Assembly (NCBI RefSeq): GCF_001194135.2
Contig: NC_068997.1
Span: 6,294,670-6,352,948, forward strand
Direction of reading: 5' to 3'
Length of the DNA: 58,279 nucleotides
Source of the DNA: Octopus bimaculoides
Lineage: Eukaryota
Shown here: in pieces, positions 4,620-44,245 of the stretch
Layout of the letters: each line of letters starts with the position of its first letter
Position numbering within the stretch: the first letter of the stretch is position 1
Translations under genes and position numbers: made by a program
Notes under the pieces: generated by a model
Database searches by the model: none
The model's input: only the letters and a program-made list of their open reading frames with translations
What the model was told of the DNA's origin: nothing

Positions 4620-4912
4620 CCGTTTCACTGTGAATTAATTTGTGGTGAGAAAATTCCAGCCGTATGATCTCTTTCTTTTTACTGTCTTTAAATATTTCAA
4701 ATGTATCAACGTAATCTCCGAATGATAGACGGTCCACCGTAGTACCAGAAACCAGGAAACAATTGGTAAGATTCACCGTATACCTTACACTATGGCCGGA
4801 CATCAAAGCTCCTGCCAGACTAACCAAATCACGTAACTCCCAGGGTCCTATATACAGATTAGCTAACTTCGGTGAATCTTTCTGAAATTTTCGTGATCTG
4901 CCAAAACGTAAT
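4620..4912 (-). CDS. Exon 4 (293 nt): end of linker and N-terminal part of a probable VirK-like domain
   Basis: Acceptor ttattctgttgatttatgttccag|A and donor ACG G|gtaagt (phase 2 in, phase 1 out). 97 open codons: LRFGRSRKFQKDSPKLANLYIGPWELRDLVSLAGALMSGHSVRYTVNLTNCFLVSGTTVDRLSFGDYVDTFEIFKDSKKKEIIRLEFSHHKLIHSET. The pattern L..AL..G.SV...VNL..C ... F.I ... FSH.KL recalls the VirK family (PF06903). The domain call is from memory and less secure than the exon itself. Confidence 0.8.
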
Positions 4913-4974
4913 CTGGAACATAAATCAACAACAGAATAAGATAAAAATGCAAAATATAGTTAAACGTCTAAATA

Positions 4975-5145
4975 TTGGTTTCAAATTTTGGCACAAGGCC
5001 AGCAATTGCGGGAAAGGATACCCAATGTTCATCTAGTACTTATTTTATCGAATCTAAAAAGATGAAAGGCAAAGTCGACCTGGGCGTAATTTGAATTCTG
5101 AACGTAAAGACTGACAAAAAGCCGCTAAGCATTTTGCTCTCCGCC
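4975..5145 (-). mobile_element. SINE family A copy, about 60 bp upstream of the exon 4 acceptor
   Basis: Reverse complement of the family A core (gatgaaaggcaaagtcgac..ggcgtaatttgaattctgaacgtaaagac..ccgctaagcatttt). Confidence 0.8.
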
Positions 5146-5444
5146 TTAGTTAAACGTTTAAATATTAGTATATGTAATTACATAATTACATAATTACATA
5201 TTAATACATATAGTTACATATAATTACAAATATTGGTAAATCATATCTCTAGACACGAATGCTATCTAAACTGTTGTATGTAGTGCGTCACAAATATGAA
5301 GTTTGCAAGGTATTGTCACCTCTAACATGTTCATATATATATATACCGGAGTAAGCACATAAATGTGAAACAAGGTGGAAAAAAGAGTATTCAAATACCA
5401 GAGGTAGAGTAATATGCTTCATTTAAAAGCAGCAAAAATATAAC

Positions 5445-5491
5445 AAAAGCTGTTACTCAGAGTTTCTCGTTCCCGTTCGTCGGACAGTTTT
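5445..5491 (-). ncRNA. Decayed minimal type-I hammerhead ribozyme motif
   Basis: Minus strand AAAACUGU-CCGACGA-ACG GGAA CGA-GAAA-CUC U GAG-UA-ACAGCUUUU: stem I, core with U4>C, GNRA-capped stem II with one mismatch, minimal stem III and GUA cleavage triplet. Confidence 0.6.
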
Positions 5492-6614
5492 GTCAAAATA
5501 GAACAGAAATAACGATATGATCAAAACTAGTTAAAGAAAACACCTTTAAAAATGAATTTGTTTCATTGGTCCTTTCAATTAACGGTCTTGAGCATGCAAT
5601 GAACAAAATGAAGGAATTCAATATAAATTCATCCTTTTATAAAAAAAAAAAGGAAATAAAAAGTGAAGGATCAACCAGCATCAACAAAAGAGCTCAATTT
5701 CGTCTAATTTTCCTTCTCTTTATTTCAAAATATTGAAATTTCTTAAATATTAAATCATTTCCTTAGTTTCGTAGTTTAAAACTAATTCACCAGACTCATC
5801 TGCACTATTGCCCGACATATTGTTTTATTTTCAAATTGAAATTTTTGTGTAAATTTATTTTACGCGGTTTCACTGAGCTAATATCATGTTTCACCTAACT
5901 CACCGTTCCAAAGAACTCTAGCACTGTTTGCTAAGTTCTTACACTCTACTCTCCCCATTGCACTAAAATGATAACAGAAATCTTAGATAATGTTTTCGTA
6001 AAATAATAATATTTAGTTGAAACGAATGGACAAAACTTGTTGGCAAATAACAAACTGAATGTTTATCTTCAAAAGAACATTAGTTTGTTATTTTTTTTAA
6101 TCAACACCCCGTTGACATTTCCGTTACTTTTCGTTTTCCTAACCAAACGAAAATTCCAGGCATGTACATTTGGCATCAGTATTGTAAAATAAATTCCAAC
6201 AAGGAGGAGGAGCAATGTGATCTTTTGTATATGCAATAAAAATATCCTACAGACTTTATAAATAATTACGAAGGGCATCATGTAACAAGTGCAGTGCTTG
6301 TTGTCTCAGATATTTTGCAATAGAAAAACCTAAACTTTAAGAAAGAAATTTGAGATTGCTTATGAAATAGGAAAATACTAACTATGCGTACGATATATCA
6401 ATCATAATATGGCCAGAACTAGAGTGAAAGGACTAAAACACAGTTAAGCTAAGGCTGCAACTGAATAAGAAAAGCTTTGCGAAAAGTACGATCATCAGAA
6501 TTTTGCATTGACTTTCACTTAAAATGTCAGAAGCCATTGAATCAGTTGAGTGACAAAACATTACACAGAAAAAATAAAATATTAGGAAAGGTGAAGTTGA
6601 ACAAAAGCATTCTT

Positions 6615-6838
6615 TTCTTATTTCTTTACTGCCCACAAGGGGCTAAACATAGAGGGGACAAACAAGGGATTAAGTCGATTACATCGACACCAGTGCGTAA
6701 CTGGTACTTAATTTATCGACCCCGAAAGGATGAAAGGTAAAGTCGACCGCGGCGGAATTTGAACTCAGAACGTAACGGCTGACGAAATACCGCTAAGCAT
6801 TTCGCCCGGCGTGCTAACGTTTCTGCCAGCTGGTCACC
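6615..6838 (-). mobile_element. Well-preserved SINE family A copy
   Basis: atcgacaccagtgcgtaactggtacttaatttatcgaccccgaaaggatgaaagg..ggcggaatttgaactcagaacgtaacgg..gctaagcatttcgcccggcgtgctaacg; A-box and B-box-like motifs read on the minus strand. Confidence 0.85.
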
Positions 6839-7285
6839 CTCCTTTCTGCCTGACGTCGCTCTTCTAACCTAATAAAAGTTGTTGAATGAATGATCGTGGC
6901 GCTTTTATGAGGTTTCCAAAGCTGCAACTATCACGCAAGTTTCTTCTTGTCAAACCATATCAAAGACTTTTATAAGGCTTATGAATTCTACCGTCAGATC
7001 CATGTTCTATTCAGATTGACCTGTGTCCTTTTGAACCAACAAGGGAGTCACCACGAGAAGGTTTCCATATTCTGACCATCAAAATGAATAACGCGTTATA
7101 TGGTAGAAAGCGTCACACACTTCACTAGCGTCGTTCTTTGAAGAAAAACATCAGCAGCTGTCTAGAAAATAAAAAACCAATAGTTCTCTTATCAACTCTC
7201 CAAAACAGTTTGGACTTGAGTACGAATGTTCATGTACATCAAACTATTAATACTACAGCCACATGTTCGAAACATATCTAAGTTT

Positions 7286-7362
<77 letters not shown>

Positions 7363-7959
7363 NNNNNNNNNNNNNNNNNNNNNNNNNNNNNNNNNNNNNN
7401 NNNNNNNNNNNNNNNNNNNNNNNNNNNNNNNNNNNNNNNNNNNNNNNNNNNNNNNNNNNNNNNNNNNNNNNNNNNNNNNNNNNNNNNNNNNNNNNNNNNN
7501 NNNNNNNNNNNNNNNNNNNNNNNNNNNNNNNNNNNNNNNNNNNNNNNNNNNNNNNNNNNNNNNNNNNNNNNNNNNNNNNNNNNNNNNNNNNNNNNNNNNN
7601 NNNNNNNNNNNNNNNNNNNNNNNNNNNNNNATTGCAGACAAACTCGTCTTAGGGCTTCGAGTTCTTGTTCACATTATTGATGGAGCGGTTGATTTCTGTA
7701 TACGTATCGTTAAATGTGGACGATTTTCAAATAAGAGTTTTCTCAGCGAGGGAACAGGATGCGCCTCTAATATGCTAACTACGGAAATATCGAAATATGA
7801 GGCAACTTGCAAGCTGTTGTTTTATCTTCTTTACGTTTCGTTTGGTCCTTCCACTTTAAATATGTTGTATTACCTTTTAAACAACCTGATATATATATAT
7901 ATATTGAAAAAAGTCGTCAGAATTTTGGAAAAAACTTCTTTCATTTATTTTATACTTTC

Positions 7960-8145
7960 ATTTCGATATTAGCACTTTCGTTCGTCTTTACGTTCTGAGT
8001 TTAAATTCCGCCGAAGTCGACTTTGCTTTTCATCCTTTCGAGGTCGATAAATCAAGTACCAGTTACGTACTGAGATCAATCTAATCGTCCCTCTAATGGT
8101 CCCTCCCCCAAAACTTCGTGCCTTGTGCCTTTAGTAGAAAAGAAT
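7960..8145 (+). mobile_element. 5'-truncated SINE family A copy
   Basis: ttacgttctgagtttaaattccgccgaagtcgactttgcttttcatcctttcgaggtcgataaa core. Confidence 0.75.
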
Positions 8146-10097
8146 AATTACTAACGGTTAGATATAATACTTTTTTCGCTATATTGTGTATTTGTTTCTC
8201 TTTGTATCTGATATTTGTTTTTGACCTTCTGTTATAATGAAGCTGCATCCCTTAATTTGCTGCCTTTGTGTACAAATACCGAGAAGAAATTTTGTGGAGC
8301 AGACGTTATTTTAACGGTATAGAACTTGTAATCACCTGAGGAGATACATCTACATCAACGGATACATCTAAGCCAGAAGTTCGATGAGTGATCGATGCTA
8401 GATGGGTCGCCACAATTGTAGTGATCAATAAACTTTCTCGTATCTTCCATCTTCCTCATTAATCGAATATGTGTGTGTGTATTTTATTTTTTTACTTGTT
8501 TCAGTCATTTCACTGCAGTCATGCTGGAGCACTGCCTTAAAGGGGTTTTAAGTCGAAGAAATCGACTCCATGACTTATTTTTTGTAAGCCTAGCACTTAT
8601 TCTATCGGACTCTTTTGCCGTACTGCTAGATTACAGGGACGTAAACACACCAACATTGGTGGCCAAGCGATGGTTGGGGACAAACACCAGTTACGTACTG
8701 GGCTCGATGTAATCGACTTATCCCTTCCCCCTAAATGTCAGGCTTTGTACCTATAGTAGAAAGGATTATGTATAAAGATGCACACACACACACAGACTCA
8801 CATGCATGGCGAGGTCGGGGCTGTGCATGTATTTCCCTTCTGCTGATTTCTTACCCCTCCCACCCCTCATTCTCTCCCGCTTCCTGCTTTATGTCTATGT
8901 ATGAGTGTCTGTCTGTCTGTCTGTCTGTCTGTATGTATGTATGGGTGGCTGGCTGGTTTGAGGGATGTAATCACAGTCTACCTTATAGCTTTCATCAATT
9001 CTCTTATCTCCTCACTTTCCTTCTTCCTCCCATGTTACGCTCTGAAATCTGTTGAGATGGGTTTTATATTATCAAGACAATTTGCTAAATACAAGACATC
9101 ACACACAATGTTATCACCCTGAGACGAAATACTTACAACTCTGGAATGCTTCACATTTTTCTGTTTGTGATCTTGTATAATTGTTTGATATTTTTTTATC
9201 TTCTTGTTTATTTCTTCTAGCACTGCTGAGCAATCTTGTAAAATTCCCAGTGGAGACTTAGACGAGAGACAAAATTGCTCATTCAGTACTCTCCAGCTAT
9301 ATCTATATATCTGGTTTTTTTTTTTTTTTCATAGGCTTCTTTTCTATAAAGAAATATTTTACGTATGCATGCATACATACAAAAACTTTACTTCGCAATC
9401 ACGTGTTCAATGTTTGATTGTGCTAAATACCTTGTGCTTCGCGTTGCTCAGAACACGAATACTCTCTCCCCCTCTCCTTCTCTCTCTCTATATGTGTGTG
9501 TGTGTGCGTGTATATATATATATATATATATATATAAACAATATATGAGTATATGCATATATATGTACATGTATGTATATACGTTCATCTACATGTACAT
9601 ACAGATACATNNNNNNNNNNNNNNNNNNNNNNNNNNNNNNNNNNNNNNNNNNNNNNNNNNNNNNNNNNNNNNNNNNNNNNNNNNNNNNNNNNNNNNNNNN
9701 NNNNNNNNNNNNNNNNNNNNNNNNNNNNNNNNNNNNNNNNNNNNNNNNNNNNNNNNNNNNNNNNNNNNNNNNNNNNNNNNNNNNNNNNNNNNNNNNNNNN
9801 NNNNNNNNNNNNNNNNNNNNNNNNNNNNNNNNNNNNNNNNNNNNNNNNNNNNNNNNNNNNNNNNNNNNNNNNNNNNNNNNNNNNNNNNNNNNNNNNNNNN
9901 NNNNNNNNNNNNNNNNNNNNNNNNNNNNNNNNNNNNNNNNNNNNNNNNNNNNNNNNNNNNNNNNNNNNNNNNNNNNNNNNNNNNNNNNNNNNNNNNNNNN
10001 NNNNNNNNNNNNNNNNNNNNNNNNNNNNNNNNNNNNNNNNNNNNNNNNNNNNNNNNNNNNNNNNNNNNNNNNNNNNNNNNNNNNNNNNNNNNNNGTG

Positions 10098-10147
<50 letters not shown>

Positions 10148-11422
10148 ATGTGTGTGTGTGAGTGTGTGCCTGTTCGTGCGTATGTGTGTAAAACACACGC
10201 ACTCATGTTTACACATGTATGCGTACGTTCCTGTATAGACGTATGCTGTGGCTATTCAACAGCCGAAAGCCTACCAGGTATTGGGTTAGCCGTAGCTGTA
10301 CATCAGCTGTAGATCGGTGAGAAAATCGATCAAGCAGTGCTTTCGGACCAAGTTCCTTGCGATATTTATTCTGCTCAAATTGCACAAGCAATCTCTTGTC
10401 ACTGCCGTAAATGCAGTGAACCAGTCCTTAGCTCGTTAAAATCATGTAACCAACAGTACCAGTGTTCACAGTATGCGATATAAATAAATAAAACATGTGT
10501 TATTTGTTCTTATGTTTCGATACGAATAACATATATCAAAAAATGGGTGTAGAAAGATTGTAGAAAAATTTCAACCATTTGTTACAATTGAAGAACAAGA
10601 ATTTCTTATCCACCAAAAGAAGAAAGTAGTCCAAGGAAATGGCAGTACAAATGTCAGCGCCGTGTGTATATGTTTATTTCTGTCTAATTTTAAATTACTG
10701 ATTTAAAGTATGTCGGGTAGTAGCACGTGTACGTGAAAATAAGCCAATCCTTATCAGATGTTGTTAGTTTTTTGCTGACACTGGGGAAAATGATAAACAA
10801 CAAATTATTATATAATTACCACCCTAGCATTATCTTAATAAGGCTAATATTGTGATATTAAATCCCAATTCATACACCCACTTTCTAAATATGTGTTGAT
10901 AGTTATCACATGTGCAATCTCTACATGGTCCCTCACGTATATTTTGGTAGTTGTCTGTTTACATAATATCCATATTTCCATCTATGTATGTCAGTAAACG
11001 TGCTTGTGTCTACATACTCTTTTACTGTTGTCAACCACTGGACTGCGGCCGTGCTGCAGCTTTCAGTAGTTGAGCTGATCAGATCAGCCCCACTACGTAT
11101 TCCGATCCGATATTTATTCTATCACTTTACTGACCTAATCGCTAAATTACACATTTGTCACAAACAGACGCAGCTCGTCATTGATCTGCACCGAGAAACA
11201 CAAACACACAGAAACACAAACACACAGAAACACACACACACACACACACACACACGCGCGCGCTCACAGACATACACACTCACACACATACATTCAAAGT
11301 CAGGCACCTCAGATTTCTGCATAGTTTCCATCAGCAGTAAAGGATCCCGACTGGGATTAAAGTTGGAGCAAAGGGTGTTGACGTTTATGATATAATACAG
11401 TAAGTGTGCGTGCGTGCGTGTG

Positions 11423-11491
<69 letters not shown>

Positions 11492-11739
11492 CGCATCGCA
11501 TTTTACTTCCAACTCCGCACGCTCCTCCCAATCTACATTTTTCGATTCAATTTGCACTCCCCCACTCCCACCCCCTACATACCTCACACGCACACGCACA
11601 AATGCTCTACAATTATATAGTTACGAGCTGCAAAACATTTCTCTATTTAAAAGATGTGGAATTGTGTACATTATTTACATTATTTATTTTTGATGGATAT
11701 TTGTCCTCATCTTGTTTGTTGTTAACACAACGTTTCGAC

Positions 11740-12080
11740 TAAAACCACCAATAGAAGAGAATATGACCAAAGACTGCGTGTACTCCATCCCATGCAGCTG
11801 TTGTAGGTTATACAAAGGGGAAACATGTCGACTCCTCAAAATAAGGGTAGAGGAACATCGCAAAGCTGTGACACGAAGATATTGATAAATCGGGTATAGC
11901 TGATCACGCATGGAAAAATGGAGACCACCTCCCCCTGTGGGATGAAATTAAAATAATAGACAGAGAACACCACTGGAAAATACGAAAGCTAAAAAGAAGC
12001 AGCTCATATGCTAGGACACAACAACCTCCTAATCAGACCAAGTGCAGATATGAATAACATGGGAACCGGTATTAAGGAAG
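11740..12080 (+). mobile_element. Penelope-like element, GIY-YIG endonuclease region (frameshifted relic)
   Basis: KDCVYSIPCSCCRLYKGETCRLLKIRVEEHRKAV / IDKSGIADHAWKNGDHLPLWDEIKIIDREHHWKIRKLK / EAAHM: the PLE pattern VY.IPC..C...Y.GET.R.L..R..EH and S.IA.HAW; two frameshifts. Confidence 0.85.
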
Positions 12081-12124
12081 GATAGGAAAATATTAGATTT
12101 ATAAGCCCTAAAATTCACTCCATG

Positions 12125-12210
12125 ATTGCCCACGGGTATATGGTGTAGTGGTTAAGAGCGCGGGCTACTAACCCCAAGTTTGATTCCAGGAAGTGACCTG
12201 AATAATAAAG
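12125..12210 (+). mobile_element. Short tRNA-like SINE or tRNA pseudogene inserted just after the Penelope fragment
   Basis: tggtgtagtggttaagagcgcgggctactaacccc..gtttgattccagg..aataataa: A box, eroded B box and AT tail. Confidence 0.5.
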
Positions 12211-12699
12211 TAAATTGACAAAATTAATTATTTTTTGAACCTGTGGAAGACGCACAAGATATCGAAATATCGTTCACTAGATGACAATGGCACTCTTCTT
12301 TTAATTTGGAGTTTTGCAAGTCTTTCAACGGGTAAACGACAATCTCCTCGCTTCTAGCAGTACCAAAGCATTATGGCTAACAGATTAAAAAAAAAATGTT
12401 GCGACACTTCGAACTCTTTACGAGCAATACATTTAAATCCCTCAAACTTGCCAACAATTCTCACTAAACCATTGGATGCAATCACCTCTTTCCCATTGTT
12501 ATCTCTATGTTTTTACTCTCAAAACTTCCCTCAATCATTCCTCGGTTCCTGCATGGATCAACCTATCTATAAAAACCGATTCAATTTGAATTTCTGCATC
12601 GATCTCATCCGTTTAGGAGCTGCAGCTGTCTTGAGCATCTGGAACCCAATAAATAACAGAAAATAAATAACATATGCCATAACGCATGTATGTTAATGA

Positions 12700-12759
<60 letters not shown>

Positions 12760-13204
12760 AAGAGGGAGAGAGAGAGAGAGACAAAGTTACCGTAATCAGA
12801 GAATTAAAAAGACCATTCAAACAAGGAAGGATTCAGTACATTTGAATGTCGGGTAGAACCATTATGAATTATAGAACGTCCAACTATTGTAGAAGGAGCT
12901 TTGAAACTGATAGCCTTTCAAAACATCTCTACAATCGTCGGACGCGCACTGTATTTAATATCTATGTGGTGTGTGTATGTGTGTGTTATTTACACACGTG
13001 TATATTGCTACGTTTATTAATGTATCTGTCTGATTAATTGTATTTCTAATGATGTATTTGAAATTCTAACCTCAAGTTAGTTTTATGTCACAACAATGCT
13101 ATGAAATAAAGAATCTGTATCTGTTTGATGATAGGGAACATAAAATGATTCTAAGAAAAGCAAAATTAGATTTGTGAGAAAATGTATATATATGTATTTG
13201 AAAC

Positions 13205-13272
13205 AAATGAATATGGAAAAGATAAAGGTAAATGAATATGGAAAAGGTAAAGGCAAATGAATATGGAAATGG
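13205..13272. repeat. 25-bp minisatellite (about 2.7 copies) immediately downstream of microexon 3 in transcript direction
   Basis: Units aaatgaatatggaaaag(a/g)taaagg(t/c) start at 13205, 13230 and 13255. Confidence 0.85.
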
Positions 13273-13298
13273 AGAACATACACGCTCATCATACATAC

Positions 13299-13349
13299 CT
13301 CGACCTCCTGCCTCTAGATGACGTGACACGAGGTGTCGGAGCGAGCAGT
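13299..13349 (-). CDS. Exon 3: 51-nt symmetric (phase 2-2) microexon encoding a basic linker, (K)LLAPTPRVTSSRGRRS(R)
   Basis: Acceptor tttctctgttcatcggccgtttctgttgcag| and donor TCG AG|gtatgt. Its phases join exon 2 (AA|A = Lys) to exon 4 (AG|A = Arg) without stops. No homology support, and the gene also stays in frame without it. Confidence 0.65.
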
Positions 13350-19898: not shown

Positions 19899-19961
<63 letters not shown>

Positions 19962-28399: not shown

Positions 28400-28435
<36 letters not shown>

Positions 28436-28759: not shown

Positions 28760-28807
<48 letters not shown>

Positions 28808-29635: not shown

Positions 29636-29670
<35 letters not shown>

Positions 29671-29897
29671 NNNNNNNNNNNNNNNNNNNNNNNNNNNNNN
29701 NNNNNNNNNNNNNNNNNNNNNNNNNNNNNNNNNNNNNNNNNNNNNNNNNNNNNNNNNNNNNNNNNNNNNNNNNNNNNNNNNNNNNNNNNNNNNNNNNNNN
29801 NNNNNNNNNNNNNNNNNNNNNNNNNNNNNNNNNNNNNNNNNNNNNNNNNNNNNNNNNNNNNNNNNNNNNNNNNNNNNNNNNNNNNNNNNNNNNNNNN

Positions 29898-29933
<36 letters not shown>

Positions 29934-31212: not shown

Positions 31213-32409
31213 TATATGTTCATCTACATACACCTGCATACACCAGGTTCAGCAGTTCGTAAGTTGCATCTGATATTTCCCTCTGTCTATGTCCTAGAAT
31301 CCTCGCTTTCAAAGAGTTTCATTTAGCTGTGAATATGAGTCACTTAGTAATGTAATGTAACACTGTAAATAAATGGGAAACTAAAATATATACTCATGTT
31401 TAAATATCCGTACTACCGTTATACATCAATAGTACAAAGTATACCGAATTTCTGCACAAGAATATTTTGCTCTGTTTATGAAGCAAAGGAAACAGTCTTC
31501 AGTACATTGGCATCAGAAGTTATAATTGATTTCATTAAGATGAGACGTTCGTTCCCTTTCAGAGCGCTAAAGTTTCACTGCCATTTCTGACAAGCTTCCT
31601 TTTTAGTCAACAACAAAAAAAGTTAATGTACTGTGCGTTTGTCTTATTAATTATATTAGTTCTTAACTTGAGAAAACCATAATCTTAAACATCCGTATAC
31701 GATCAGTAAAATAGATTTCTCTTATAACCACACACCCAAGTTTATGCAGTCGAGGAAATCAATTGGTGTTACAGTTATGTCTTTCTCGTGGACATTAGTA
31801 ACATTCACGAAGGGAAATGATTGAAAGGAAAATCAAACCGGAAATTGAAAATTGATATCAGTTCACAGGAATCTTGTTTCCTGTTGTAAACCTAATAAAC
31901 ATGTACATATACTTTCAAAAACAATCCCATAAATCATTTGGTTGTTGAGTTAAATCTGAGGGCGTCATCTTTATATTAAATATCTGACAAGTCATCTTGG
32001 TGAGTCCCTCTGCAATTCAGACTGAACTCAGTATTGCACGCCAATGAAACTTAGGTCCCGTTTTCAGTGTTACCACTTCTGTTAGAAGCTACCCAACAAG
32101 GGAGCCTCTGCACGATCAGTTGATCAAATTTCTTTTAGTTCATAAACTATTATTTTACGAACGAACTTATAGAGTGTATTCCAAAGTACATGCTACCTAG
32201 GCAAAGATCTGAATAGTACCTTAAACATAGGTCTCCTCGATCAGGACTCACCAGAAGTTAAAGAGCAACAACCACTACACTCAGTATCAAATTTTATCCA
32301 GCAGAGTCAGTGACTGAAGTTTTTGAGAATCAAGTACATGTATCAAAATACAACTTATTTCGCCTCAGCTATTTCCGGTATATGAATGTCTTCAACAGTT
32401 CAATATTCT

Positions 32410-32795
32410 TTTATTTGTTTCAGTGATTTGACTGCGGCTATGCTGGAGCACCGCCTTTAGTCGAACAAATCAACCTCAGGACTTATTCTTTGTAAGCCTA
32501 GTACTTATTCTATCGGTCTCTTTTACCGAACCGCTAAGTTACGGGGACGTAAACACATCAGCATCAGTTGCCAAGCGATGGTGATAGGACCTACACAGAA
32601 CAAACATACACATACACACACACACACATACATATGTACGATAGGCTTCTTTCAGTTTCCACCTACCAAATCCACTCACAAGGCTTTGGTCGACCCGAGG
32701 CTGTAGTAGCGGACACTTGTCCAAGGTGCCACGCAGTGGGACTGAACCCGAAACCATGTGGTTGGTAAGCAAGCTACTTACCACACAGCCACTTC
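32410..32795 (-). mobile_element. Near full-length tRNA-SINE family C (fragments also at about 8490-8690, 11020-11130, 18620-18800, 23730-23870, 29560-29600, 57690-57790)
   Basis: Minus-strand head agtggctgtgtggtaagtagcttgcttaccaaccacatggtttcgggttcagtcccactgcg with A box TGGCTGTGTGG and B-box-like GGTTCAGTCCC, an internal CA/TA microsatellite and tail ..ctccagcatagccgcagtcaaatcactgaaacaaataaaaag. Confidence 0.8.
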
Positions 32796-33009
32796 NNNNN
32801 NNNNNNNNNNNNNNNNNNNNNNNNNNNNNNNNNNNNNNNNNNNNNNNNNNNNNNNNNNNNNNNNNNNNNNNNNNNNNNNNNNNNNNNNNNNNNNNNNNNN
32901 NNNNNNNNNNNNNNNNNNNNNNNNNNNNNNNNNNNNNNNNNNNNNNNNNNNNNNNNNNNNNNNNNNNNNNTATATATATATATATATATCAACTGATGCA
33001 TTTTGCAAG

Positions 33010-33245
33010 AAAGACTATGCTAAAACAGCCATACTCTCTTCCTTCAGGGGAATCACACACAGCGTCTAATAATATCAGGGACTTAGGAATAATTGTTGAC
33101 AACAATCTCAGCTGGAGAGCCCACATCAACAATAAGGTTGCTATAGCTCGTAGGATGAACTCCTGAATCCCAAGAACCTTCCGGTGCCGAGAACAGGGTG
33201 TCATCTCCTTCTTTGCATGGCCACACCTCGAATACTGCTGCCTAG
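33010..33245 (+). mobile_element. CR1/L2/Jockey-group LINE RT C-terminal fragment
   Basis: IRDLGIIVDNNLSWRAHINNKVAIARRMNS*I.RTFRCRE...PHLEYCC. Confidence 0.7.
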
Positions 33246-34862
33246 AGAGAATAAAAAAGCGTGTGGATTTAGCGATGAAGCACGGTGACTGTTTGGGAAA
33301 AAATGGTTTGACAGGAGAGATAGAAAGAAGAGATAATAAAGTATTGGTGATCCCAAAACGAAGATACGCATGAAAATGTTTAAGTGTGTGTGTGTATGGA
33401 CGATGGTGTGTTTGTGTGCAGATAGTGGTGTGTGGTATGGGTGCTGGGAAGTGGTCAGTGCTAGTGTGTTTAGATTGGTGTGAGGTGGTGTGATGTGGTG
33501 TGTAGGTGTTGTGATATATGTGGCGTTCGATCATATAATAATATAAATAATATATAAATATATGCATATTAGCGGTTGTAGTAACCGAATAAGGGATAAA
33601 AATATCCGTATTTACTATCGGTATCAGTTACCTGTACTATCGCAGTTACCTGTGCTATAGGGGTCCAAACAAATTGGACCCCTATCCGTAGATTATTTTT
33701 TAATATAAAACATGACATAACATTTCTTACAGCTGTTTCCGCTTCCAATACCAATCGGGGTTTACGAAAGAATTTCGAAATTAATATTCGTAATCTTCAT
33801 AGGAGATTTGATCTAGTTCGTAGAGCTTCATCAGAGTGAATACAAATGCGTAAAATTAAATAAACGAAGGGAAGAGGGAATAGGAAAGAACAGGCGCTAG
33901 AGAAGAGGCCAGAAGGTTCAATATATCAAAATCATACCATCTCCCAGCGTGGAGCTTTGAAGTCGGTAGATAGCTAAAAGTAAGGTGATATATCCAAACG
34001 CCAAAGGATTTTTATCTGATGCTCCACCGATTCTGCTTTCCACTCACCATTTTCATTCACAACTAATCATTCCGGAAAAGCATATTATTCTGGAGGCTAA
34101 ATCTGCGAGTTTTTGGCGCAATGATTTTTGTTTTTGTTGGCGAAATGATGAAACACACATGAAATACAGTTCATTTCTGTCTGCTAAGATCAGAAGAAGA
34201 ATTAAAATATTTATTACATATCTATTTCTGGTGACTGCTGGGAATACGAATGCTTTAAAATAGACTTCGTACAAAATACTGAGTTACAAAACAAAAATAG
34301 AAATCATTCGTTGCTCAGAAGTTACACAAAGCTTCATAAAACATCAGAATACAATTAGGGAAAATGAAAAAAAAAAAAAAATTTACAGTAAAAAAATCGG
34401 TTGCAAATCGACCGCAATAATAATATTTCTTTAAATACGTTGAATGGTTCTTATAAAGGTGTTTGATACAGAACGAAAAGTAAAGTTTGAAGGTCATCGA
34501 TTCTTCACATTACATGCAGGGAAAGGAAACATCGCTTATGTAGTGTATAAAAAAAAACAACTTGGTGTTGGAAACAATACAGAGCATACGACACTACACA
34601 TAAGACTATAGCAAGATTTACTAAAAAAAAATACTATCTCTACGTTTATATTTGTGAATTGATAATATTAATGTGAGTAAAAAGTTAAAACAAAAATATA
34701 ATGAAAGAAAAAAAATGATTGAAATACGACGAGAGAATATGACAACAACTCACACAAGTTGTAAATAAACACTTACCTGACGTCCAACAAGATTGAGAAC
34801 GTTATCCTTGAAAGAGAATTGGATTAATGATATTACATACTGGTGTATGTCTATATACATAA

Positions 34863-34913
<51 letters not shown>

Positions 34914-35259
34914 AGATTCACCAGGAAGCAATAAATTACAGAACTCTATACGTAAATGCAGAGAATTCTTTAATACGTTATAAATGAAAGCTTTGTGATT
35001 CCAGAACTCCGACTTACACGTTTCTAACCTTTCAGCCTGAAATATATTCAAACAACAAGTTGTTGAAGAGAAAACAGACTCCAGTCACCAGTTGAATGAT
35101 CGGAAGTATGAGACTCGGAGTTCTGCAATTACGATCTTTTCAGTTAGCATATATACACATATTCATACATATATAATATATACATATATTCATTTATAAT
35201 ATATACATATATTCAGTTATAATATATACATATATCCATACACAAATAGACGGACAGAC

Positions 35260-35321
<62 letters not shown>

Positions 35322-36443
35322 GATAAGGGATGATAGAGAGATAAAACAGGTTAACGAAAATTGAAATACTTGTACTGTATTTTTCTCTACTTGTATAATA
35401 CAGAGAATTTTTACAAAAATAACATGAAGTAACATTATGAGAAAGACAGGGATAGAGAGATGGTATACGGAGAAAGAGATAGAGGAAGTGGGGAGACAGA
35501 GAAGTCTGGTAACTTTATGGAAGTAGTTTATCAGTAATATACCATCCCATTCCTTGTCTCTTTTCAACTGAGATTTTTATTCTGGAAAACTGACAGGTAA
35601 GTAGAAATCCTTACAATGATTCATTGAAGTATTCAACAGCCTTTATTGGTAAAATAACTGAAAATCGTGAATTTGGATTCGTTTGAGCCATGTTCTGGAC
35701 AATAATATTTCTTCATATTCCTTCTCGACCTCTTCTAACTACAGGTCGGTATCTCGTAAAACATTGAGGTGTGCTCTGCTAGACTATGAAAACATTCCAG
35801 AGGCATTAGCTGTCTCAACTAAAGTTTCATAGGATCTCGTTAAATTCTAATTAATGCTTGACAATAGAGTTGACACCTGTCCTGAGAAGTTTAGGAATAG
35901 AATAACAAACCACTATTTAAAACCAATTTACTTACATTCTATCCTAAAGTGTATTTTATAAGTGAAACTGTTTAGCTTCCCGTTCGGTATGTTTCCGGCT
36001 CTACAAAAACAGAGCTGTGAAACAATTATCATAAAAAAAGTTATTTCGGACAACTATAATTTATTAAAACATTTTGTTGTACTATTATATAGTGTTGGCT
36101 GAACATAAAGTATATTACTGATACTCAAATAACTTTCAAAGGAGACGCCGAGGTATTTTTGATCTCAGAAAAGTGTAAGCGAACTTTTAACGGCGTGAAG
36201 TACCGATATGGTCATCTGCTCTTCAACAATAATTTTGTTAGTGATGAGGACATGAACTAAAATATCTGAATGACATTAATGTTAAATACCAGTGTCAGGT
36301 ATGTTTTCAAAATGATCGTTCTGTTTAGCCTAATTACGTTGCAATAGATATGTTGAAATAAGGTAGAATACAACATGCAATACGTACATACACACACACA
36401 CACACTCTCTCTCTCACTCACTCACTCGCGCGCGTATAGATAA

Positions 36444-36482
<39 letters not shown>

Positions 36483-36483
36483 T

Positions 36484-36532
<49 letters not shown>

Positions 36533-36533
36533 C

Positions 36534-36589
<56 letters not shown>

Positions 36590-36739
36590 CAGCTTGCTCC
36601 CGTTCTTCCCGTAACAATTACACTCACCCCCACCCCCCAATCACTACCAGATAAGACAAACAGCTCGCGTGAATAGCCGTTTGCCGTAAGATTTTGTCCT
36701 GAGGCAACAGCCCAAACTAAAATTAAATAACAACCCTAG

Positions 36740-38327
36740 TAATAAGCAACATTATCATTGTCACCCTATATAAGAACAAAAGGGACGAAAGCGACTTTAA
36801 TAACTACCGAGGTATTATTCTGTAAAGCATCGTTGGGAAGGTCTTTGCTCGGTGATCCTAAACAGAATACAGAAATTCGCTGAGAGGGTATAGCCCGAAT
36901 TTCAGTACGGTTTCAGATCAGAACGCTCCACCACCAACATGATCTCTCTTCGACAGCTACTGAAGCGCCGAGAGCAAAGGCAACTTTTTATCACCTTCAT
37001 CTACCTCGCAAAGGCTTTTGACTTAGTCAGTAGAGACGGCTTATTCAAAATCCTTGCCAAGATTGGCTGTCCTCCAAGACTCCTCAAGATTATCCAATCA
37101 TTTCACGCGGAAAAGTGTCGTTCAACTTGATGGCTCTTTTTCCGGAAGCATTTAACGTACGTAGCGGCATGAAGAAGGGCTGTGTGCTTTCCCCCACTCT
37201 GTTTGGCATCTTCTTTGCAGTCATGCTGAAACATGCATTTTGGACATCAACTAATGGTGTTTACCTTCAAACCAAATCAGACGATAAATTGTTTAGTCCG
37301 TCGAGGCTGAAAGCAAAACACAGGGTGCGTCAGGTATTTGTCAGAGAAAGGCTATTCGTGGACGACGCAGCACTGACAGCGCACTCTGAAGAGCAAAGGC
37401 AGCACTTCGTGGACAAATTTTCAAAGGCCTGTCAGGAACTCAGCCTGACTATCGGTCTGAAGAAGACCCAAAGTCTCAAGTACTCACCACCCACCATCAC
37501 CAACTACAACCTGGAGGTAGTCCATCAATTCACCTATCTCAACTCTACCATCGCTGATTACCTCTCGCTGGATCCTGAGATCAGCAGGCGAAACGGACAA
37601 GCATCTCCCACATTTGCCAGGCTCACAAAGAGGGTCTGGGAAAACAAAAAAAAACTGGCTGCAAACACCGAGATTACTGTCTACAAGGCGTGCGTCCTTA
37701 GTACGCTACTTTACGGCAGTGAGATGTGGAGCCTCTACTCCAGACAGGAGCGGCGTCTCAATCTCTTTCACCCGCGTAATTTGAGACGCATCTTGGATGT
37801 CAAGTGGACCGACCACATCCCCAACACCGAAGTCCTCAACTGAGCCGAGGTACCCAGCATACTCACCCTGCTCCAGCAGCATTGTTTGCGCTGGCTCCGT
37901 CATGTACATCGCATGCTGGACGGAAGGATTGGAAAAGACTTCTTGTATGGGGAATTTACCACAAGCACAAGAGCACGAGGACGACCTCATCTTCGTTTCA
38001 AGGACGACTGCAAGAGGCATACGAAGCCGCTTCATCTAGACGTCCTAAGATAGGAGGAGGTTAAAAACGATCACCCACACTGGAAACAAATACTGCAAAA
38101 GGGGATGAAACGAGCGGAAGCAAAACAGGAACTCGCCACCAAAGAAAAGCGCACTCAGCGGAAGGAAAAACAAATGGCGCGGCAGAGAGCTCCTTCAAAT
38201 ACAGTTGGTGTATGCGTGACTACCACTCCCGTATGGACTTCTGCAGCTACAGCAGACGCTGCACCACCAGTAGCTGATACGATTTCTTCGGGCGCAGATC
38301 CATGGCCTCTCGAGACCGACGGATGCC

Positions 38328-38330
<3 letters not shown>
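36740..38330 (+). mobile_element. 5'-truncated RTE-clade LINE: reverse transcriptase to 3' end, decayed
   Basis: LYKNK.D.SD.NNYRGI, FIYLAKAFDLVSR, GMKKGCVLSPTLF, LFVDDAAL, FTYLNS, LLYGSEMW, RWL.HV.RM, degenerate C-terminal C..R.CHSR..L.S..RRC, and 3' end ccatggcctctcgagaccgacggatgcctac followed by (TA)n(TG)n. Confidence 0.92.
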
Positions 38331-38422
<92 letters not shown>

Positions 38423-40117
38423 CTGAATATATGTATATATAATTCATCGATATTGTATTGTTTAATAACAACAGAAAGTGGAAGACAGGTTATTTATCAA
38501 CTTGCTTCTACTGATTTGACAAACTTTATTGATAAGGAGAGTGTTGCAAAAAGAGAAGGCAGGTTGCCCAATGTTTTCTGCTAACGAACAGAGCTGGAAC
38601 TAAGTATTCGTAGTAACAATAGTTGTTTATCTGTAATTATATTTGTAACTCAACGTAGACAATACCTTCTCTTGGTCATTAAATATTTAATCAATGAAAT
38701 CAAGGAAACGAGATGAAAAGAGTGTGTAATATATCATTAGGTTCGATAATGTGTACATGGGTCGATTTACTTGAATGTAAACTGGAGAAAGAGAATACAA
38801 GAATATTGTAAACTTAAGAGGAAAGTGTGTATTAATTATAACAACTTCGACGGGGTCTTTAATTATTTTATTGTAATATGATAATGAAAAGCATTCTTAC
38901 AATCTTGGTAGCTACCAGTCTCATTCCTATCTTAGTTTTTGAAAGTTATTTTTATTTTTTCCATAATTTTAGAAATCGAAGAATTGATAACAGAACGCTA
39001 CAAATAGATTGTAGTGTTAGTGTCCTTCCAAAAAGAAAAGAAAAACGTAAATAAATTAAATTTGAATTTTTCTTTTTGTTTCTCAATTGTTTGTTTTCCA
39101 GTCAATGAGACACAAAATCTTAACTTAAAACCCTCCAAAAAATAAAATGACTCTTCCGAGAATATAATAATTATTATTCTGTCTCTAATTTTACAGAGCG
39201 TGTCTATTATTCTAATTGCTTAGTGTTCAATAGTAGCAATGAGAGAATCAGAAAGATGTTTTATAAAAATAGCTCACGCTACAAATGTTTATGTTTTAAC
39301 AATTAAATCTAAATTGCTTGCCAATAATCCAGCACTTAGATGTAAAAAGAGCTACAAATCATTACAAATTATTTAGCAGAAGTTTCTAAAAAGAAAAACT
39401 TATAGATACTTACGGAATCATTCTTATTTCTTCGGTTTTAAAAACACACAATATTTTGAAAATGTAAACCATAAAAGCTCAATACATACAAATAGACAGG
39501 AATTAAGAAACGATAACCAAGATAAAAGTTGTGGGTTAAAGTTATTAATTTACAACTTCTACTAATAAATCGAATGTTTTCCATGAATAAAGACTCTGTC
39601 TTTCAGGCAAGAAGACTTGAGTGTCGCAATTTTTATTTCTTTTCCAAACACACAGTTAAATAGACATGAAATGTCTTCATTGACGGACACTAATTTCTAC
39701 CCATCTTTCATCATGCCAATTATCTCGAAGTGTTGTGCATGTCATAAGTCATAAAGCACTGAATTAAATGTCGTGAATTACTTGTTATCTTTCTACATTT
39801 TGCATTCAAATCCCATCAAATCTCTTGTCTCAATCCTGCTTCACTTTAATAATACCATCGGTTGTCTCAACGTTTGTGCTAATATGGAAAAGTATTTCTA
39901 ATTAGATATGCTTAAAGTAAATATATATATATATATACATANNNNNNNNNNNNNNNNNNNNNNNNNNNNNNNNNNNNNNNNNNNNNNNNNNNNNNNNNNN
40001 NNNNNNNNNNNNNNNNNNNNNNNNNNNNNNNNNNNNNNNNNNNNNNNNNNNNNNNNNNNNNNNNNNNNNNNNNNNNNNNNNNNNNNNNNNNNNNATATAT
40101 ATATATATATAATAATA

Positions 40118-40169
<52 letters not shown>

Positions 40170-40449
40170 TATGAGGGACAAAATCCAAAATTACAGGTAA
40201 AAACTCATTAAAATCAATTTATAAAAAATTAAAATTAAATTGAGCTTTACAGATTAAAATATATATAAATATATAGTTTTAGGGAAAAGAACCAAGTTTC
40301 ATGAACTCATCAATGAAAATCCACTATCACATATAGAAAAATTAATAATTAAAAGCACAATAAACGAGTATAATATAATACAAAGTAAATATCATAAGAT
40401 AAAGACAGGGGACTGTCACAGTAAGTTGACAGCATACAACTACTTCATT

Positions 40450-41650
40450 GTGAATATTATCTCCAACTTTGAAGCCACTACAATCAGCCTTGTTAAATAA
40501 CTGGTTAATCTTCAGATGAATTAATTGAGGGAACCTTTTATTCAAGATCGTAATGATTTTCGACTGAAACTAGAATTTACCATGCAGGGAGTTACTACAA
40601 GCAACATGACTGGACACGACATTAACAACAACACACCCGACGAACAGAACGAAAACAACAGCTCAACAGGTAAACAGAATCTTTCTAGCTGTTTTTATGG
40701 AGGATCCGTAATTACAAAACTCATTTTTCTTAGAGTTATGAATTGAGTACTGATTTATTTAACTGTTATAGGAGAGTGAAACAAAACCGCGCTGTTGGGT
40801 ATATGAATAGACTGAAATCATATTGGGTCTATCTGCACCTAGCACAAAATCATTTGACTGTAAAACAATTACGTCAACAAGTAAAATTTGTGGAACATAG
40901 GAAGAAAGTTAGTGATTGTAACTTTATTAAAAGAAGATCTCAAGTTAGCCTTCTCCCAAGCAAACAGTGAACAATGTTAGAACTCCACACAGTTTCACAG
41001 TTAACAACATTCCAACAGATTCTATACTGCCTACCAGCCAAGCTACATTGCAGGTTAACGCAACTGACCATTGTCCCTCTAAAGATCATTGTAGTAGTAA
41101 TCAGGGGGGGGGGTATATCCGTGAAATATGCACTAAGTAAAATTTTTAAAGAAAAAGTAACTTTAGCTCTGAAGTACTCCCTCGAAGAGAGAGTATTCTT
41201 TGCCAAAGTAAGGAAAGACTAACAGACACGGTATTAAAAGCTGATAATGAAATTGGAGAGGGGTATTTACAGCAGTGTAATCAGCCCTCTTTCTGGCAGA
41301 TTAACGCCTGTCTATAAGCTTTGCCTACTACCGCAAAACAATAGACAAAGGACCCTCAAAAAGTAAATAAAACCGAAGCAACAAAGAAAGTGTCATCATG
41401 GGTTTTAACAACAGAGGAAAGGACAGCTGACTTACAGAAGACCATCAGCCGTGTAAGATATAGACCCCTTCTGGAGGAAAATCTAGAGAAGATATAGACC
41501 CCTTCTAGAGGAAAATCTAGAGTGAAAAGATGGAGTTTAACCGAGGTGCTCTGTGACTGAAAGAAATTTGAAGAAGTTATTGCCCCTGTGGAAGTCGCGA
41601 AGTTCTCCGTTTTATGATTCAATACTACATATACCTATTGCACTTACTAT
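40450..41650 (+). mobile_element. Probable 5' region of an R4/Dong-like non-LTR element; inverted sister copy at about 19960-20190
   Basis: CYRRVK....GYMNRLKSYW..LH....HLTVKQLRQQ resembles the R4-clade ORF N-terminus. Block 40450-40685 is visibly homologous to the reverse complement of 19960-20190. 34-bp tandem duplication at 41455-41522. Confidence 0.5.
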
Positions 41651-41747
41651 TTCTCTATTTTTAGAANNNNNNNNNNNNNNNNNNNNNNNNNNNNNNNNNN
41701 NNNNNNNNNNNNNNNNNNNNNNNNNNNNNNNNNNNNNNNNNNNNNNN

Positions 41748-41797
<50 letters not shown>

Positions 41798-43717
41798 CTG
41801 TGTTTGTGCGTGAGTGTGGGTGTATGAGTGCGTGTGTGCGTATGTAATTTCGAATATTACTAATTTGAACAAGTTTTCTTGTCGACGCTAAATAGACAAA
41901 TTCTCTGTCGGATTGTTAACAGATAAGTCTTAGTACGTGAGTATCTGTTTGTAGTCAACGCTAAACACTAGACTATTATATCACTGACCAAACATAACAA
42001 GCTTCACATATCAACAACAATTTTTCTGTCTTCTTTTAATTCAAACATTCAGTAGTTTTTTGTTCACAAGTTTCTGAATTTGGAAACAGTAGAACAGTTA
42101 CTGTTTTTAAGATTTTACTTGAATAACTCTTCTCTTAAACTTTGTTCTGTGAACCTGCACTAGATCTACGTGGTGACCAAATAGATTAGCATAATAAATG
42201 AAAATCGCCTGTTGTGTTAGAGGTGAAGTGGGCTATATGTCTTTAATAAGGTTGTCATTTCTTTTATACAAAACGTTTATTATAAATGAAAAACAAACTA
42301 TTGCACTATAGAAGTTGTGTCTTCTCACATAAGCACGAGGTTTATATCAAATATGATGCTGTAGTACGTTCATACCTTTTCCGTGGTGTTTAGTAACTAA
42401 ATTCAAGAGAAGTAACTCGAACCACGTAACCAATGTACACTACAGATAAAGTATTTCTTTACAACGTATTACATTACGTCATACAAGAGAAAAAAGATAC
42501 ACACACACAGATATAATATAACTCGATGCTTTAAGAACGAATTCCTTCGGTCTATTTGTTCTGCGGTGAATTACAGACGCCAATGAATAAATATCTAATC
42601 AGCTCTACCTCTTTCCCCAAACTGGAATCGTGTTTCTTAAGTTTAAAATCATCCTAACTCTACAGTCAGTATTATAACATGGTTTTCAAAAGGATTTTTT
42701 TAAGCTATTTAAATTTTTTTAAAAATTGCTCTCATATTCAAATTGGTATCAATCAAATCACACCCGACAGTGCAGTTAATTAGTGTAGAAATAGATCTGT
42801 AAAAACTAAGGAGACAAAGAACTCTCAGATATTCATATCATCTGTGACAATGGCATTCGGAATGGATCATAGGAATCTTCCAAATATTTCATTTCATTTC
42901 AAAATCTAACTGTAATTCTAAAATACCCTTTGTTAAAATAAATCCTTTAAGAGTAACTAATTATAATTAAATAACTTGATTGACCAGAAAAATATAATTC
43001 AGTTCAGAAAATGGATCGGATAAAAGCCTAAAAGTAGTTAAACAACAGATCAAACTGTCTTCTTTGAATTCTAATATGAATTAATTATTAATGATGAAGA
43101 AGATGAGGGATAATAGAGTGAGCTTGTCCGTTCCAATTTCATTCATTTAAGAGTTAATATGAAATAACAGGATTCATACAATATTTAAACAAGAAAAGGG
43201 GGAAAGCAGTGCTTATCAGAAAGAAAACTTTTAATGAGTAAAATAATTATATGCTTTTAATGTGACTTGTTTTTTGGGTTTTTTAATTAGTAATTATTAT
43301 CATGACTTTGTTAAAATATCTATTATTATTTCAATGTTAATCTTCTTTCACATTTAATGTTTTAGTATCGCAAATGTTTCAGACTCTTGTTATTAACTCC
43401 TTTGTTGATGTTTGTCTGTTGATCTAACTGCTCCCATAAAATACAGCTATAATTCATTAACGGGCATTTACACATACAGATCGCTTAATACTCACACATG
43501 AAAACACACACAGATATATATATACACAAATATACAACAATACATATGTATGTATGCATGTATGAATGCATGTGTGTATGCATGTATGAGTGTGTATGAA
43601 TATATGTATCTATGTGTGTATGAATGTATACATGTAAGAACGTATATGGCTGGTTACACTTTGTTAAATGTTTCATACATCTTTATAGTTTTTTTTTTTT
43701 TAATAATAGTGTCTTAC

Positions 43718-44245
43718 CTTTTCTCCTTTCATATTTGCTACACACTGCGGTCCAGTAGCAGCCGCAAAAGTTCGCATTCCTAATCGTCTCCAAAACATGT
43801 CACATTCTCTGTTGGAATAGAGTTCAGCACTGGTCATGTTGTGTAACTGAAATCTTGCTGCACGTGAATTACGGATGTCACCAATCTCTTCCAATTTATA
43901 AACTTCCATTCGGATAGAATTTTGAACTGGATCATGGAGGAAACTGTATATCTTTTGCTGAGCTGGTTTAATTGATTTGTCCATAAAATGTTCCACATAA
44001 AAGTTTGTAGTATCATCGTCCAAAGATGGCAGTTGAATCGGTGTATAGCGTGACCAAAAGAAGATATGTCGTTCTCGTGTGGGTACAGCATTTGACAAAT
44101 AAGCGTCATTGTGATACTGTTTTAGGTTGCTATACTCTCCGGGAAGTATTCGAGCCAAAATTCGCAAATCACGCCTTAAAGACGCTAGCGCCACTCGCGT
44201 AATCATAAGAAGAATGAAGCATATAATCTTTTTGAACTCGGCCAT
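43718..44245 (-). CDS. Exon 1 (176 aa) of a secreted CpcT/CpeT-domain protein: signal peptide plus most of the T-type bilin-lyase-like barrel
   Basis: ATG at 44245 opens MAEFKKIICFILLMITRVALA, with basic n-region, hydrophobic core and A-x-A site. Collinear matches to cyanobacterial CpcT as remembered: DLRILARILPGEYSNLKQ ~ DIATLARWMAADFSNQAQ; RHIFF ~ AHIRV; NFYVEHFMD ~ GFFVEQAYD; IRMEVYKL ~ IHIENYTV; ECDMFW ~ GCNMIV; PQCVANMKGEK ~ KGCIVVRKGQK. Ends GAA AAG|gtaaga, a phase-0 donor at 43718/43717. Confidence 0.9.

Follow-up and report, generated by a model that had tools for sequence, protein, structure and literature searches.

A predicted secreted octopus protein that combines a CpcT/CpeT-type barrel with two VirK-type domains

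What is a relative of the cyanobacterial T-type bilin lyase CpcT doing in an octopus? The question is raised by a gene in Octopus bimaculoides (GCF_001194135.2, NC_068997.1:6,294,670-6,352,948), where we analysed a stretch of 58,279 nucleotides (nt), hereafter the window, whose own numbering is used throughout. Four minus-strand exons, each preceded by AG and followed by GT, splice into an open chain of 337 amino acids, which a first-pass annotation had read as the fusion of a CpcT/CpeT-like domain to a VirK-like domain. The full protein has about 521 residues and consists of a signal peptide, a calyx beta-barrel of the CpcT/CpeT type, a linker and two tandem beta domains of the VirK type; the window holds roughly the first two-thirds of the gene and the first 337 of the 521 residues. 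The proposed fusion thus stood insofar as both domain types were recovered by Pfam, profile and fold, but the architecture has three domains (CpeT+VirK+VirK) and the VirK match of the fragment alone lies below threshold. Mollusc proteins of this kind are already present in databases with automatic Pfam labels, and they represent an animal branch, so far undescribed, of a known fold family. As to function, we lean, at a little under an even chance, towards an extracellular, disulfide-stabilised ligand-binding or carrier protein that is non-enzymatic and is not a phycobiliprotein lyase.

The N-terminal domain, residues ~24-222, is by sequence and by predicted fold a member of the Pfam CpeT family (PF06206, DUF1001). 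The chain encoded in the window matched this family with 63.1 bits against a cut-off of 21 (E 4e-17) over residues 30-197, and the four cephalopod orthologues scored 48.6-61.9 bits. A profile of 27 CpeT domains detected Nostoc CpcT (4O4O) over its full length with an E value of 2.5e-18; the same profile gave a partial match to the plant protein CRUMPLED LEAF (CRL; 6LIX) at 4e-4 and a match to a phage CpeT (5HI8) at 0.011. We also modelled the Octopus sinensis protein with AlphaFold2 (AF2) from an alignment of 17 sequences. The model has three beta-rich domains and a mean predicted local distance difference test score (pLDDT) of 78, and CpcT and the Legionella protein Lpg1832 were its only confident Foldseek matches in the PDB. 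For CpcT (4o4o/4o4s), the E value was 1e-8 and the target-normalised template modelling (TM) score 0.77, with a root-mean-square deviation (rmsd) of 3.0-3.1 over ~200 columns. The motif G36-x-Y38-S39-N40-x-x-Q43 aligns to F18-S19-N20..Q23 of CpcT, and C148/C168 to C116/C137. This cysteine pair is invariant in 17/17 mollusc sequences and the N-terminal motif is present in 16 of them, the other being a Bradybaena model without an N-terminus.

Tyr65, Arg66, Arg68 and Asp163 are reported to be pocket or key residues of CpcT (Zhou et al. 2014, JBC). At the first three of these positions the octopus protein has S95, Q96 and K98 (S-Q-Q-K). The Tyr65 position is occupied by S, A, F, K, D or I in all molluscs aligned. 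The Arg66 position is R or K in the non-cephalopod molluscs and Q in cephalopods, while the Arg68 position retains its arginine in Haliotis, Lottia, Batillaria and one further protein (P0005) only, with K in cephalopods. E194, at the position of Asp163, is nearly invariant in molluscs. T-type bilin lyases join a phycobilin to Cys-153/155 in the beta subunit of a phycobiliprotein. Judged by its sequence, the octopus protein is not a T-type bilin lyase in the functional sense, because Tyr65, reportedly a defining pocket residue, was looked for and is absent.

The C-terminal domains, residues ~262-392 and ~398-521, are members of the VirK family (PF06903), again by sequence and by predicted fold. 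The fragment encoded in the window scored only 18.5 bits against a cut-off of 23.7 because it covers just half of the first VirK domain. At full length, the O. sinensis orthologue reached 34.8 bits, split over two stretches, and the remaining three cephalopod proteins gave 26.2-31.2 bits. A profile of 31 lophotrochozoan VirK domains detected Lpg1832 (5XTA) with an E value of 2.2e-7 and both cysteines aligned, and Foldseek matched the model to the same structure with an E value of 3e-6, a TM score of 0.83 and an rmsd of 2.2 over 124 columns. Both C291/C376 and C426/C505 align with the two cysteines of Lpg1832. This VirK-like protein, also called NttG, leaves the bacterium by type II secretion and has no defined activity (PMC6617341).

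Several features point to a life outside the cell. The octopus N-terminus, MAEFKKIICFILLMITRVALA followed after the predicted cleavage point by SLRR, has a KK n-region, a 13-residue hydrophobic core and A-L-A at positions -3 to -1; it reads as a signal peptide, and the product looks secreted, as the first-pass annotation had also read directly from the sequence. Both sequons noted there, N136 (NMT) and N287 (NLT), are present and, together with N351, are kept in 4/4 cephalopod orthologues. Six cysteines are invariant or nearly invariant in a 17-sequence mollusc alignment and fall as one pair in each domain (C148/C168, C291/C376 and C426/C505), so that one disulfide per domain is predicted. The linker between barrel and VirK domains comprises ~40 residues and is very basic and variable, and residues 223-261 have pLDDT values of <50 in the model of the O. 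sinensis protein.

The gene in the window is arranged as follows, in the order of transcription:

Exon 1, 43718..44245, minus strand: 528 nt, residues 1-176, start codon at 44245-44243 and GT donor at 43717; encodes the signal peptide (residues ~1-21) and most of the CpcT/CpeT-like barrel, with the GxYSNxxQ motif, N136, C148 and C168; placed by a tblastn match to orthologue residues 1-176.
Intron 1, 19110..43717, minus strand: 24.6 kb; holds the micro-exon, seven assembly gaps and a reverse-transcriptase fragment.
Micro-exon, 34777..34806, minus strand: 30 nt encoding DNVLNLVGRQ, phase 0/0, AG before and GTAAGT after; absent from the first-pass gene model.
Exon 2, 18970..19109, minus strand: 140 nt, residues 177-223; the last barrel strands, with the nearly invariant E194 and W196.
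Exon 3, 13299..13349, minus strand: 51-nt cassette encoding LLAPTPRVTSSRGRRSR, part of the disordered basic linker, with RGRR at residues 235-238.
Intron 3, 4913..13298, minus strand: 8.4 kb, with assembly gaps at 7363-7630 and 9611-10094.
Exon 4, 4620..4912, minus strand: 293 nt, residues 240-337; the last residues of the linker and the N-terminal half of VirK-like domain 1, with N287 and C291.
Start of intron 4, 1..4619, minus strand: contains a gap at 4043-4333 flanked by (TA)n.

An ATG opens exon 1 and the cumulative phases at the joins of exons 1-4 are 0, 2 and 2. The earlier claim of four phase-compatible exons in an animal gene is upheld by the splice sites, by the spliceosomal introns and by the orthologue in O. 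sinensis. That of an open 337-residue chain holds for the frame, although the chain is incomplete: exon 4 has no stop codon and reaches a GTAAGT donor in phase 1, which means that the gene runs past the window edge and that its coding sequence is cut there. A tblastn search with four orthologues found no match to residues 338-521 in window positions 1-4619. These residues are encoded beyond the start of the window, the gap at 4043-4333 being a less likely site.

The spliced chain differs from O. sinensis LOC115220992 isoform X2 (521 amino acids, "uncharacterized") by 16 substitutions and no insertion or deletion (~95% identity), an agreement far beyond what chance would give. As this alignment is ungapped, no constitutive coding exon for residues 1-337 can be concealed in the assembly gaps. 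The further cephalopod matches were an Argonauta hians protein (P0002) and two others (P0003 and P0004), and a word-indexed search with the 17-sequence alignment returned just the same four cephalopod proteins. The P0003 open reading frame (ORF), which covers the CpeT and both VirK regions, lies on 2-3 kb contigs from three independent sequencing runs; because these contigs have no introns, we interpret them as transcripts. They place the counterpart of exon 4 in the same transcript as the barrel, within a single ORF, in a related cephalopod; for O. bimaculoides, the membership of exon 4 claimed earlier is predicted by orthology.

The window has 35% G+C and abundant dinucleotide repeats. All 11 of its 11 N-runs are intronic or lie upstream of the gene or in intergenic DNA, and none comes closer than 287 nt to an exon edge. 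Most of them (e.g., 4043-4333, 28436-28759 and 29671-29897) have a long (TA)n, (TG)n or (GA)n tract at one end or at both. Given this placement at microsatellite tracts, the gaps look like unresolved microsatellites and not like uncertain joins, and the reading frame is unaffected.

The linker appears to vary between the cephalopod proteins. Exon 3 is absent from A. hians P0002 and from P0004, both of which carry DNVLNLVGRQ after exon 1, and the micro-exon at 34806-34777 is a 100% match to residues 178-187 of P0002. Across the four cephalopod proteins, exon 3 and the micro-exon occur in opposite combinations, the one being in where the other is out. Exon 3 holds the sole R-x-R-R furin-type site of the octopus protein, and R-x-K/R-R motifs were found in the linkers of 5/13 orthologues scanned.

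The gene is widespread in molluscs. When 1.84 billion representative proteins were searched exhaustively with a profile, 103 matched at E <= 1e-3, and every named full-length match with the CpeT+VirK+VirK arrangement that we looked up came from a mollusc, whether cephalopod, gastropod or bivalve. Besides Octopus and Argonauta, the species are from Sinanodonta, Potamilus, Mactra, Mytilus, Pinctada, Physella, Aplysia, Haliotis, Bradybaena, Lymnaea, Batillaria, Lottia, Plakobranchus and Bulinus (16 named in all). Numerous short matches resemble exon-1 fragments of such genes. All of the named three-domain proteins are labelled hypothetical or uncharacterised, and literature searches (CpeT+VirK, DUF1001, VirK in molluscs and the accessions) found no paper on the animal proteins; the expectation that the protein might already exist as an "uncharacterized protein" was correct for LOC115220992 and for the mollusc entries. 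According to a paper of 2024, animals have no CRL homologues (PMC11606413).

The two domain types were also seen apart. Tandem-VirK proteins without a CpeT barrel occur in the brachiopod Lingula anatina (XP_013386055, P0059) and the bivalve Dreissena (XP_052233131, P0083), with P0053, P0061 and P0063 as further examples; the Pfam VirK model misses some of these, giving no match to P0059. CpeT-only proteins were found in the gastropods Aplysia (XP_005101804, P0033), Elysia (RUS80587, P0043) and Bradybaena (BFZ12768, P0036), as well as in P0077, and the Bradybaena protein has a long mucin-like N-terminal region rich in Ser, Thr, Gln and Pro. Both sorts of stand-alone paralogue have N-termini that resemble signal peptides, and the CpeT-only proteins cluster with the three-domain proteins in a rough tree.

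Outside the eukaryotes, the closest relatives of the mollusc barrel are not the cyanobacterial lyases. A hidden Markov model (HMM) of the mollusc barrels alone detected 112 bacterial proteins of ~320-350 amino acids with a median of 97 bits, against 26.5 bits for Nostoc CpcT. These proteins share 22-28% identity with the mollusc barrel and have N-termini that resemble signal peptides. They are annotated as "chromophore lyase CpcT/CpeT" and, where the organism is named, belong to Cytophagales, Bacteroidota and Acidobacteria, i.e., to non-phototrophic phyla. In 7/7 loci examined (among L001-L009, fetched with P0129, P0227, P0237, P0143, P0184, P0231 and P0210, from Cytophagales, Acidobacteria and other bacteria), a gene for a TonB-dependent receptor directly adjoins that for the CpeT-like protein (~320-380 amino acids). 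The receptor was confirmed in one further locus, L011. Other neighbours in the seven loci include DUF1838 in four, a flavin amine oxidase in two, and citrate-synthase, PrpD, aconitase and CoA-transferase genes. These loci look like an undescribed uptake and catabolism module, and the "lyase" label of the group is probably wrong. In marine Flavobacteriaceae (L012-L023; e.g., L021:4900-14495), a conserved gene run, apparently an operon, surrounds the CpeT-like gene and comprises peroxiredoxin, FGE-sulfatase-like, flavin amine oxidase, CpeT-like, cytochrome c and glyoxalase-type genes, two MFS transporters and an aminotransferase; several of these loci have two or three CpeT-like paralogues within 8 kb.

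The bacterial proteins carry a Y-R-Q-R motif, in which Y98, R99 and R101 are invariant and Q100 is at least 90% conserved (43 sequences) and which corresponds to Tyr65, Arg66 and Arg68 of CpcT. A model of one of them, P0129, has a pLDDT of 94 and the fold of CpcT and CRL (TM score 0.78), and its residues ~225-322 form an all-beta C-terminal domain (pLDDT ~95-98). We found no PDB fold match and no Pfam family for this C-terminal domain. The octopus protein lacks both this domain, with its ...IGINLRW.Q.G.T end, and the Y-R-Q-R motif, and has VirK domains instead; because of these two differences, we place it outside the TonB-receptor-linked subgroup.

Two candidate links between the bacterial proteins and VirK were considered and rejected. 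The bacterial C-terminal domain could have been a diverged VirK, as expected of an ancestral fusion, but hhalign gave a probability of 0.5% and there was no PDB match. The bacterial-looking protein P0047 (461 amino acids) has a weakly VirK-like N-terminus, then a CpeT domain and then the bacterial C-terminal domain, i.e., the reverse domain order; it was dropped with an hhalign probability of 76% over 62 columns and no cysteines, and no relatives of its N-terminus were found in the genome and metagenome contigs searched. Around 16 bacterial CpeT-like genes, no VirK-like ORF turned up within 8 kb, and the bacterial-type VirK P0089 had no match when scanned against metagenomes. In a rough neighbour-joining tree, the mollusc barrels group together (bootstrap 51), followed by protist-like sequences and then by bacteria, with CpcT distant; a bootstrap value this low does not allow horizontal transfer to be told from vertical descent.

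How might such a protein work? We envisage that it would follow the secretory pathway out of the cell, acquire N-glycans on the way and owe its stability to a single disulfide in each domain. A small ligand, probably one that bears carboxylates or is hydrophobic, would sit in the calyx, with a linear tetrapyrrole as one candidate, and the two VirK domains may dock the protein to a partner or a surface. Inclusion or skipping of exon 3 would add or remove the RGRR proprotein-convertase site, so that cleavage of some isoforms may release the barrel from the VirK pair. The extracellular part of this proposal is suggested by the signal peptide, the conserved sequons and the six paired cysteines, and by the fact that the VirK-like NttG is itself a type II-secreted protein. 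Binding or carriage of a ligand is preferred over catalysis because the host has no phycobiliprotein substrate and the key residue Tyr65 is missing, because the genes of the closest relatives lie where one expects the ligand-capture partners of outer-membrane transporters, and because CRL shows that a protein of this fold can retain its bilin pocket and yet serve another purpose. A number of points nevertheless weigh against this preference. Every functional step in the scheme is one that we infer, and the argument from Tyr65, Arg66 and Asp163 depends on the roles reported for them by Zhou et al. 2014. The G-x-Y/F-S/D-N-x-x-Q motif, the cysteine pair and the acidic E194 that are shared with CpcT have been kept, and the Arg66 position is R or K outside cephalopods; these scaffold residues may still frame a bilin-type pocket or even permit catalysis. 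The TonB-receptor link belongs to bacterial relatives with another C-terminal domain and may not carry over to the animal protein, and the furin-site idea would rest on a motif present in the linkers of 5 of the 13 orthologues.

A more specific version, in line with the proposal of the first-pass annotation, is that the protein handles bilins or other tetrapyrroles outside the cell (biliverdin, dietary phycobilins, porphyrins or heme), in pigment transport, detoxification or coloration. Bilins and porphyrins serve molluscs as shell pigments and the ink of Aplysia is made from phycoerythrobilin. The CpcT fold, N-terminal motif, cysteine pair and acidic residue are kept, the equivalents of Arg66 and Arg68 persist in Haliotis, Lottia and Batillaria, and the non-lyase homologue CRL retains phycocyanobilin (PCB) binding. 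A tetrapyrrole is a reasonable candidate ligand for the octopus barrel. However, Tyr65 is lost in all aligned molluscs, Arg66 and Arg68 are Q and K in cephalopods, and the closest bacterial loci contain amine oxidase, citrate-synthase, PrpD and aconitase-type genes with no heme or bilin genes seen; we consider this version unlikely. If the calyx holds no small ligand, the protein may instead be an interaction or scaffold module like CRL and its rice counterpart SSG7. The DUF1001 domain of SSG7 pulls down the TamB-like DUF490 of TIC236/SSG4 in vitro, CRL functions independently of PCB binding (PMC11606413), and the bacterial relatives adjoin outer-membrane beta-barrel proteins. CRL is, however, membrane-anchored in the plastid while the mollusc protein is predicted to be soluble and secreted, and the match of CRL to the profile is a weak and partial one (E 4e-4), which makes a scaffold unlikely. 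It is also conceivable that the protein is a secreted immune or microbe-interaction factor, which binds a microbial product or, in a kind of nutritional immunity, mimics and sequesters a bacterial nutrient (e.g., the substrate of a TonB receptor). Elsewhere, both domains are typically found in secreted proteins of bacteria (VirK/NttG and the TonB-receptor-linked CpeT-like proteins), and lophotrochozoans have separate secreted tandem-VirK and CpeT-only paralogues, one with a mucin-like region. Yet the gene looks single-copy in most named species, which is atypical of fast-expanding immune families, and this reading is purely inferential; we regard it as distinctly unlikely.

An enzymatic role, as an active T-type bilin lyase or as a reverse "de-lyase" acting on dietary phycobiliproteins, would fit the membership in PF06206, the CpcT-like fold and the acidic residue conserved at the position of Asp163. 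Against it stand the lack of conservation of Tyr65 and Arg66 and the low score of CpcT with the mollusc-barrel HMM (26.5 bits, compared with ~97 for relatives from non-phototrophic phyla). Octopuses are carnivores and are not known to have phycobiliproteins, and the family is present in carnivorous cephalopods as well as elsewhere in molluscs. We consider such activity very improbable. Finally, both domains are mainly bacterial and the assembly is rich in gaps, so bacterial contamination, a chimeric gene model or a pseudogene has to be considered. The gene nevertheless has canonical 5-25 kb introns within AT-rich animal DNA full of microsatellites and LINEs (long interspersed nuclear elements), an open reading frame, an ungapped 95% match to O. 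sinensis, orthologues in 16 named mollusc species and intronless transcript contigs that carry the whole ORF. An artefact can hardly account for these observations. Beyond these readings, a bolder scenario, which we rate as speculative and improbable, is that molluscs inherited a bacterial barrel of the TonB-paired type, possibly by an ancient transfer, fused it to VirK and now use it as a bilin or porphyrin carrier, with a splice-controlled furin site that frees the barrel from its VirK anchor.

An ORF of 242 amino acids at 37115-37843 (plus strand), in intron 1, matches RVT_1 with 31.4 bits and is a fragment of a LINE-type retroelement on the strand opposite to the gene. A second ORF, at 49635-50069, resembles the tail of a reverse transcriptase and has no Pfam match.

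The conserved branch described here extends the CpcT/CRL (DUF1001) family to animals and spans cephalopods, gastropods and bivalves, against the statement in the literature that it is absent from them (PMC11606413). Identification of a ligand would provide a testable starting point for the role of the VirK domains, a lead on what the TonB-receptor-linked "chromophore lyase" proteins of non-phototrophic bacteria bind and another on how tetrapyrroles or other small pigments move outside the cells of molluscs. If no ligand is found, this would be an ordinary uncharacterised secreted protein. Were the scenario of a bacterial barrel turned carrier true, the protein would be a missing link in the traffic of tetrapyrrole pigments in molluscs (shell, ink, skin and eggs).

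In comparison with known systems, the mollusc protein shares with cyanobacterial CpcT/CpeT (Nostoc All5339, 4O4O/4O4S) the Pfam family, the calyx fold, the N-terminal motif, the cysteine pair and an acidic residue at the Asp163 position. It differs in having only 17% identity, in lacking Tyr65 and, in cephalopods, Arg66 and Arg68, in being predicted to be secreted and glycosylated, in its fusion to two VirK domains and in residing in a host without a phycobiliprotein substrate. Plant CRUMPLED LEAF and rice SSG7 (DUF1001, 6LIX) are likewise CpcT homologues in organisms without phycobilisomes. CRL keeps PCB binding while its biological role is independent of it (PMC11606413; bioRxiv 10.1101/2021.04.25.441383). 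In contrast to the mollusc protein, CRL sits anchored in the outer envelope of plastids, where TIC236 is its partner, and its match to the mollusc and bacterial profile is weak and partial. The TonB-receptor-linked bacterial proteins resemble the mollusc barrel in their signal peptide, C...W...C motif and CpcT fold. The VirK family (Agrobacterium VirK and Legionella NttG/Lpg1832) has the same fold as the mollusc VirK domains, and NttG is also secreted, but the mollusc domains share 14% identity with it, form a tandem pair fused to a CpcT-like barrel and are encoded by a eukaryotic gene with introns. The stand-alone lophotrochozoan paralogues have the same two domain types as the octopus protein, but on separate proteins; hence, the three-domain fusion is one arrangement within a wider and undescribed lophotrochozoan repertoire.

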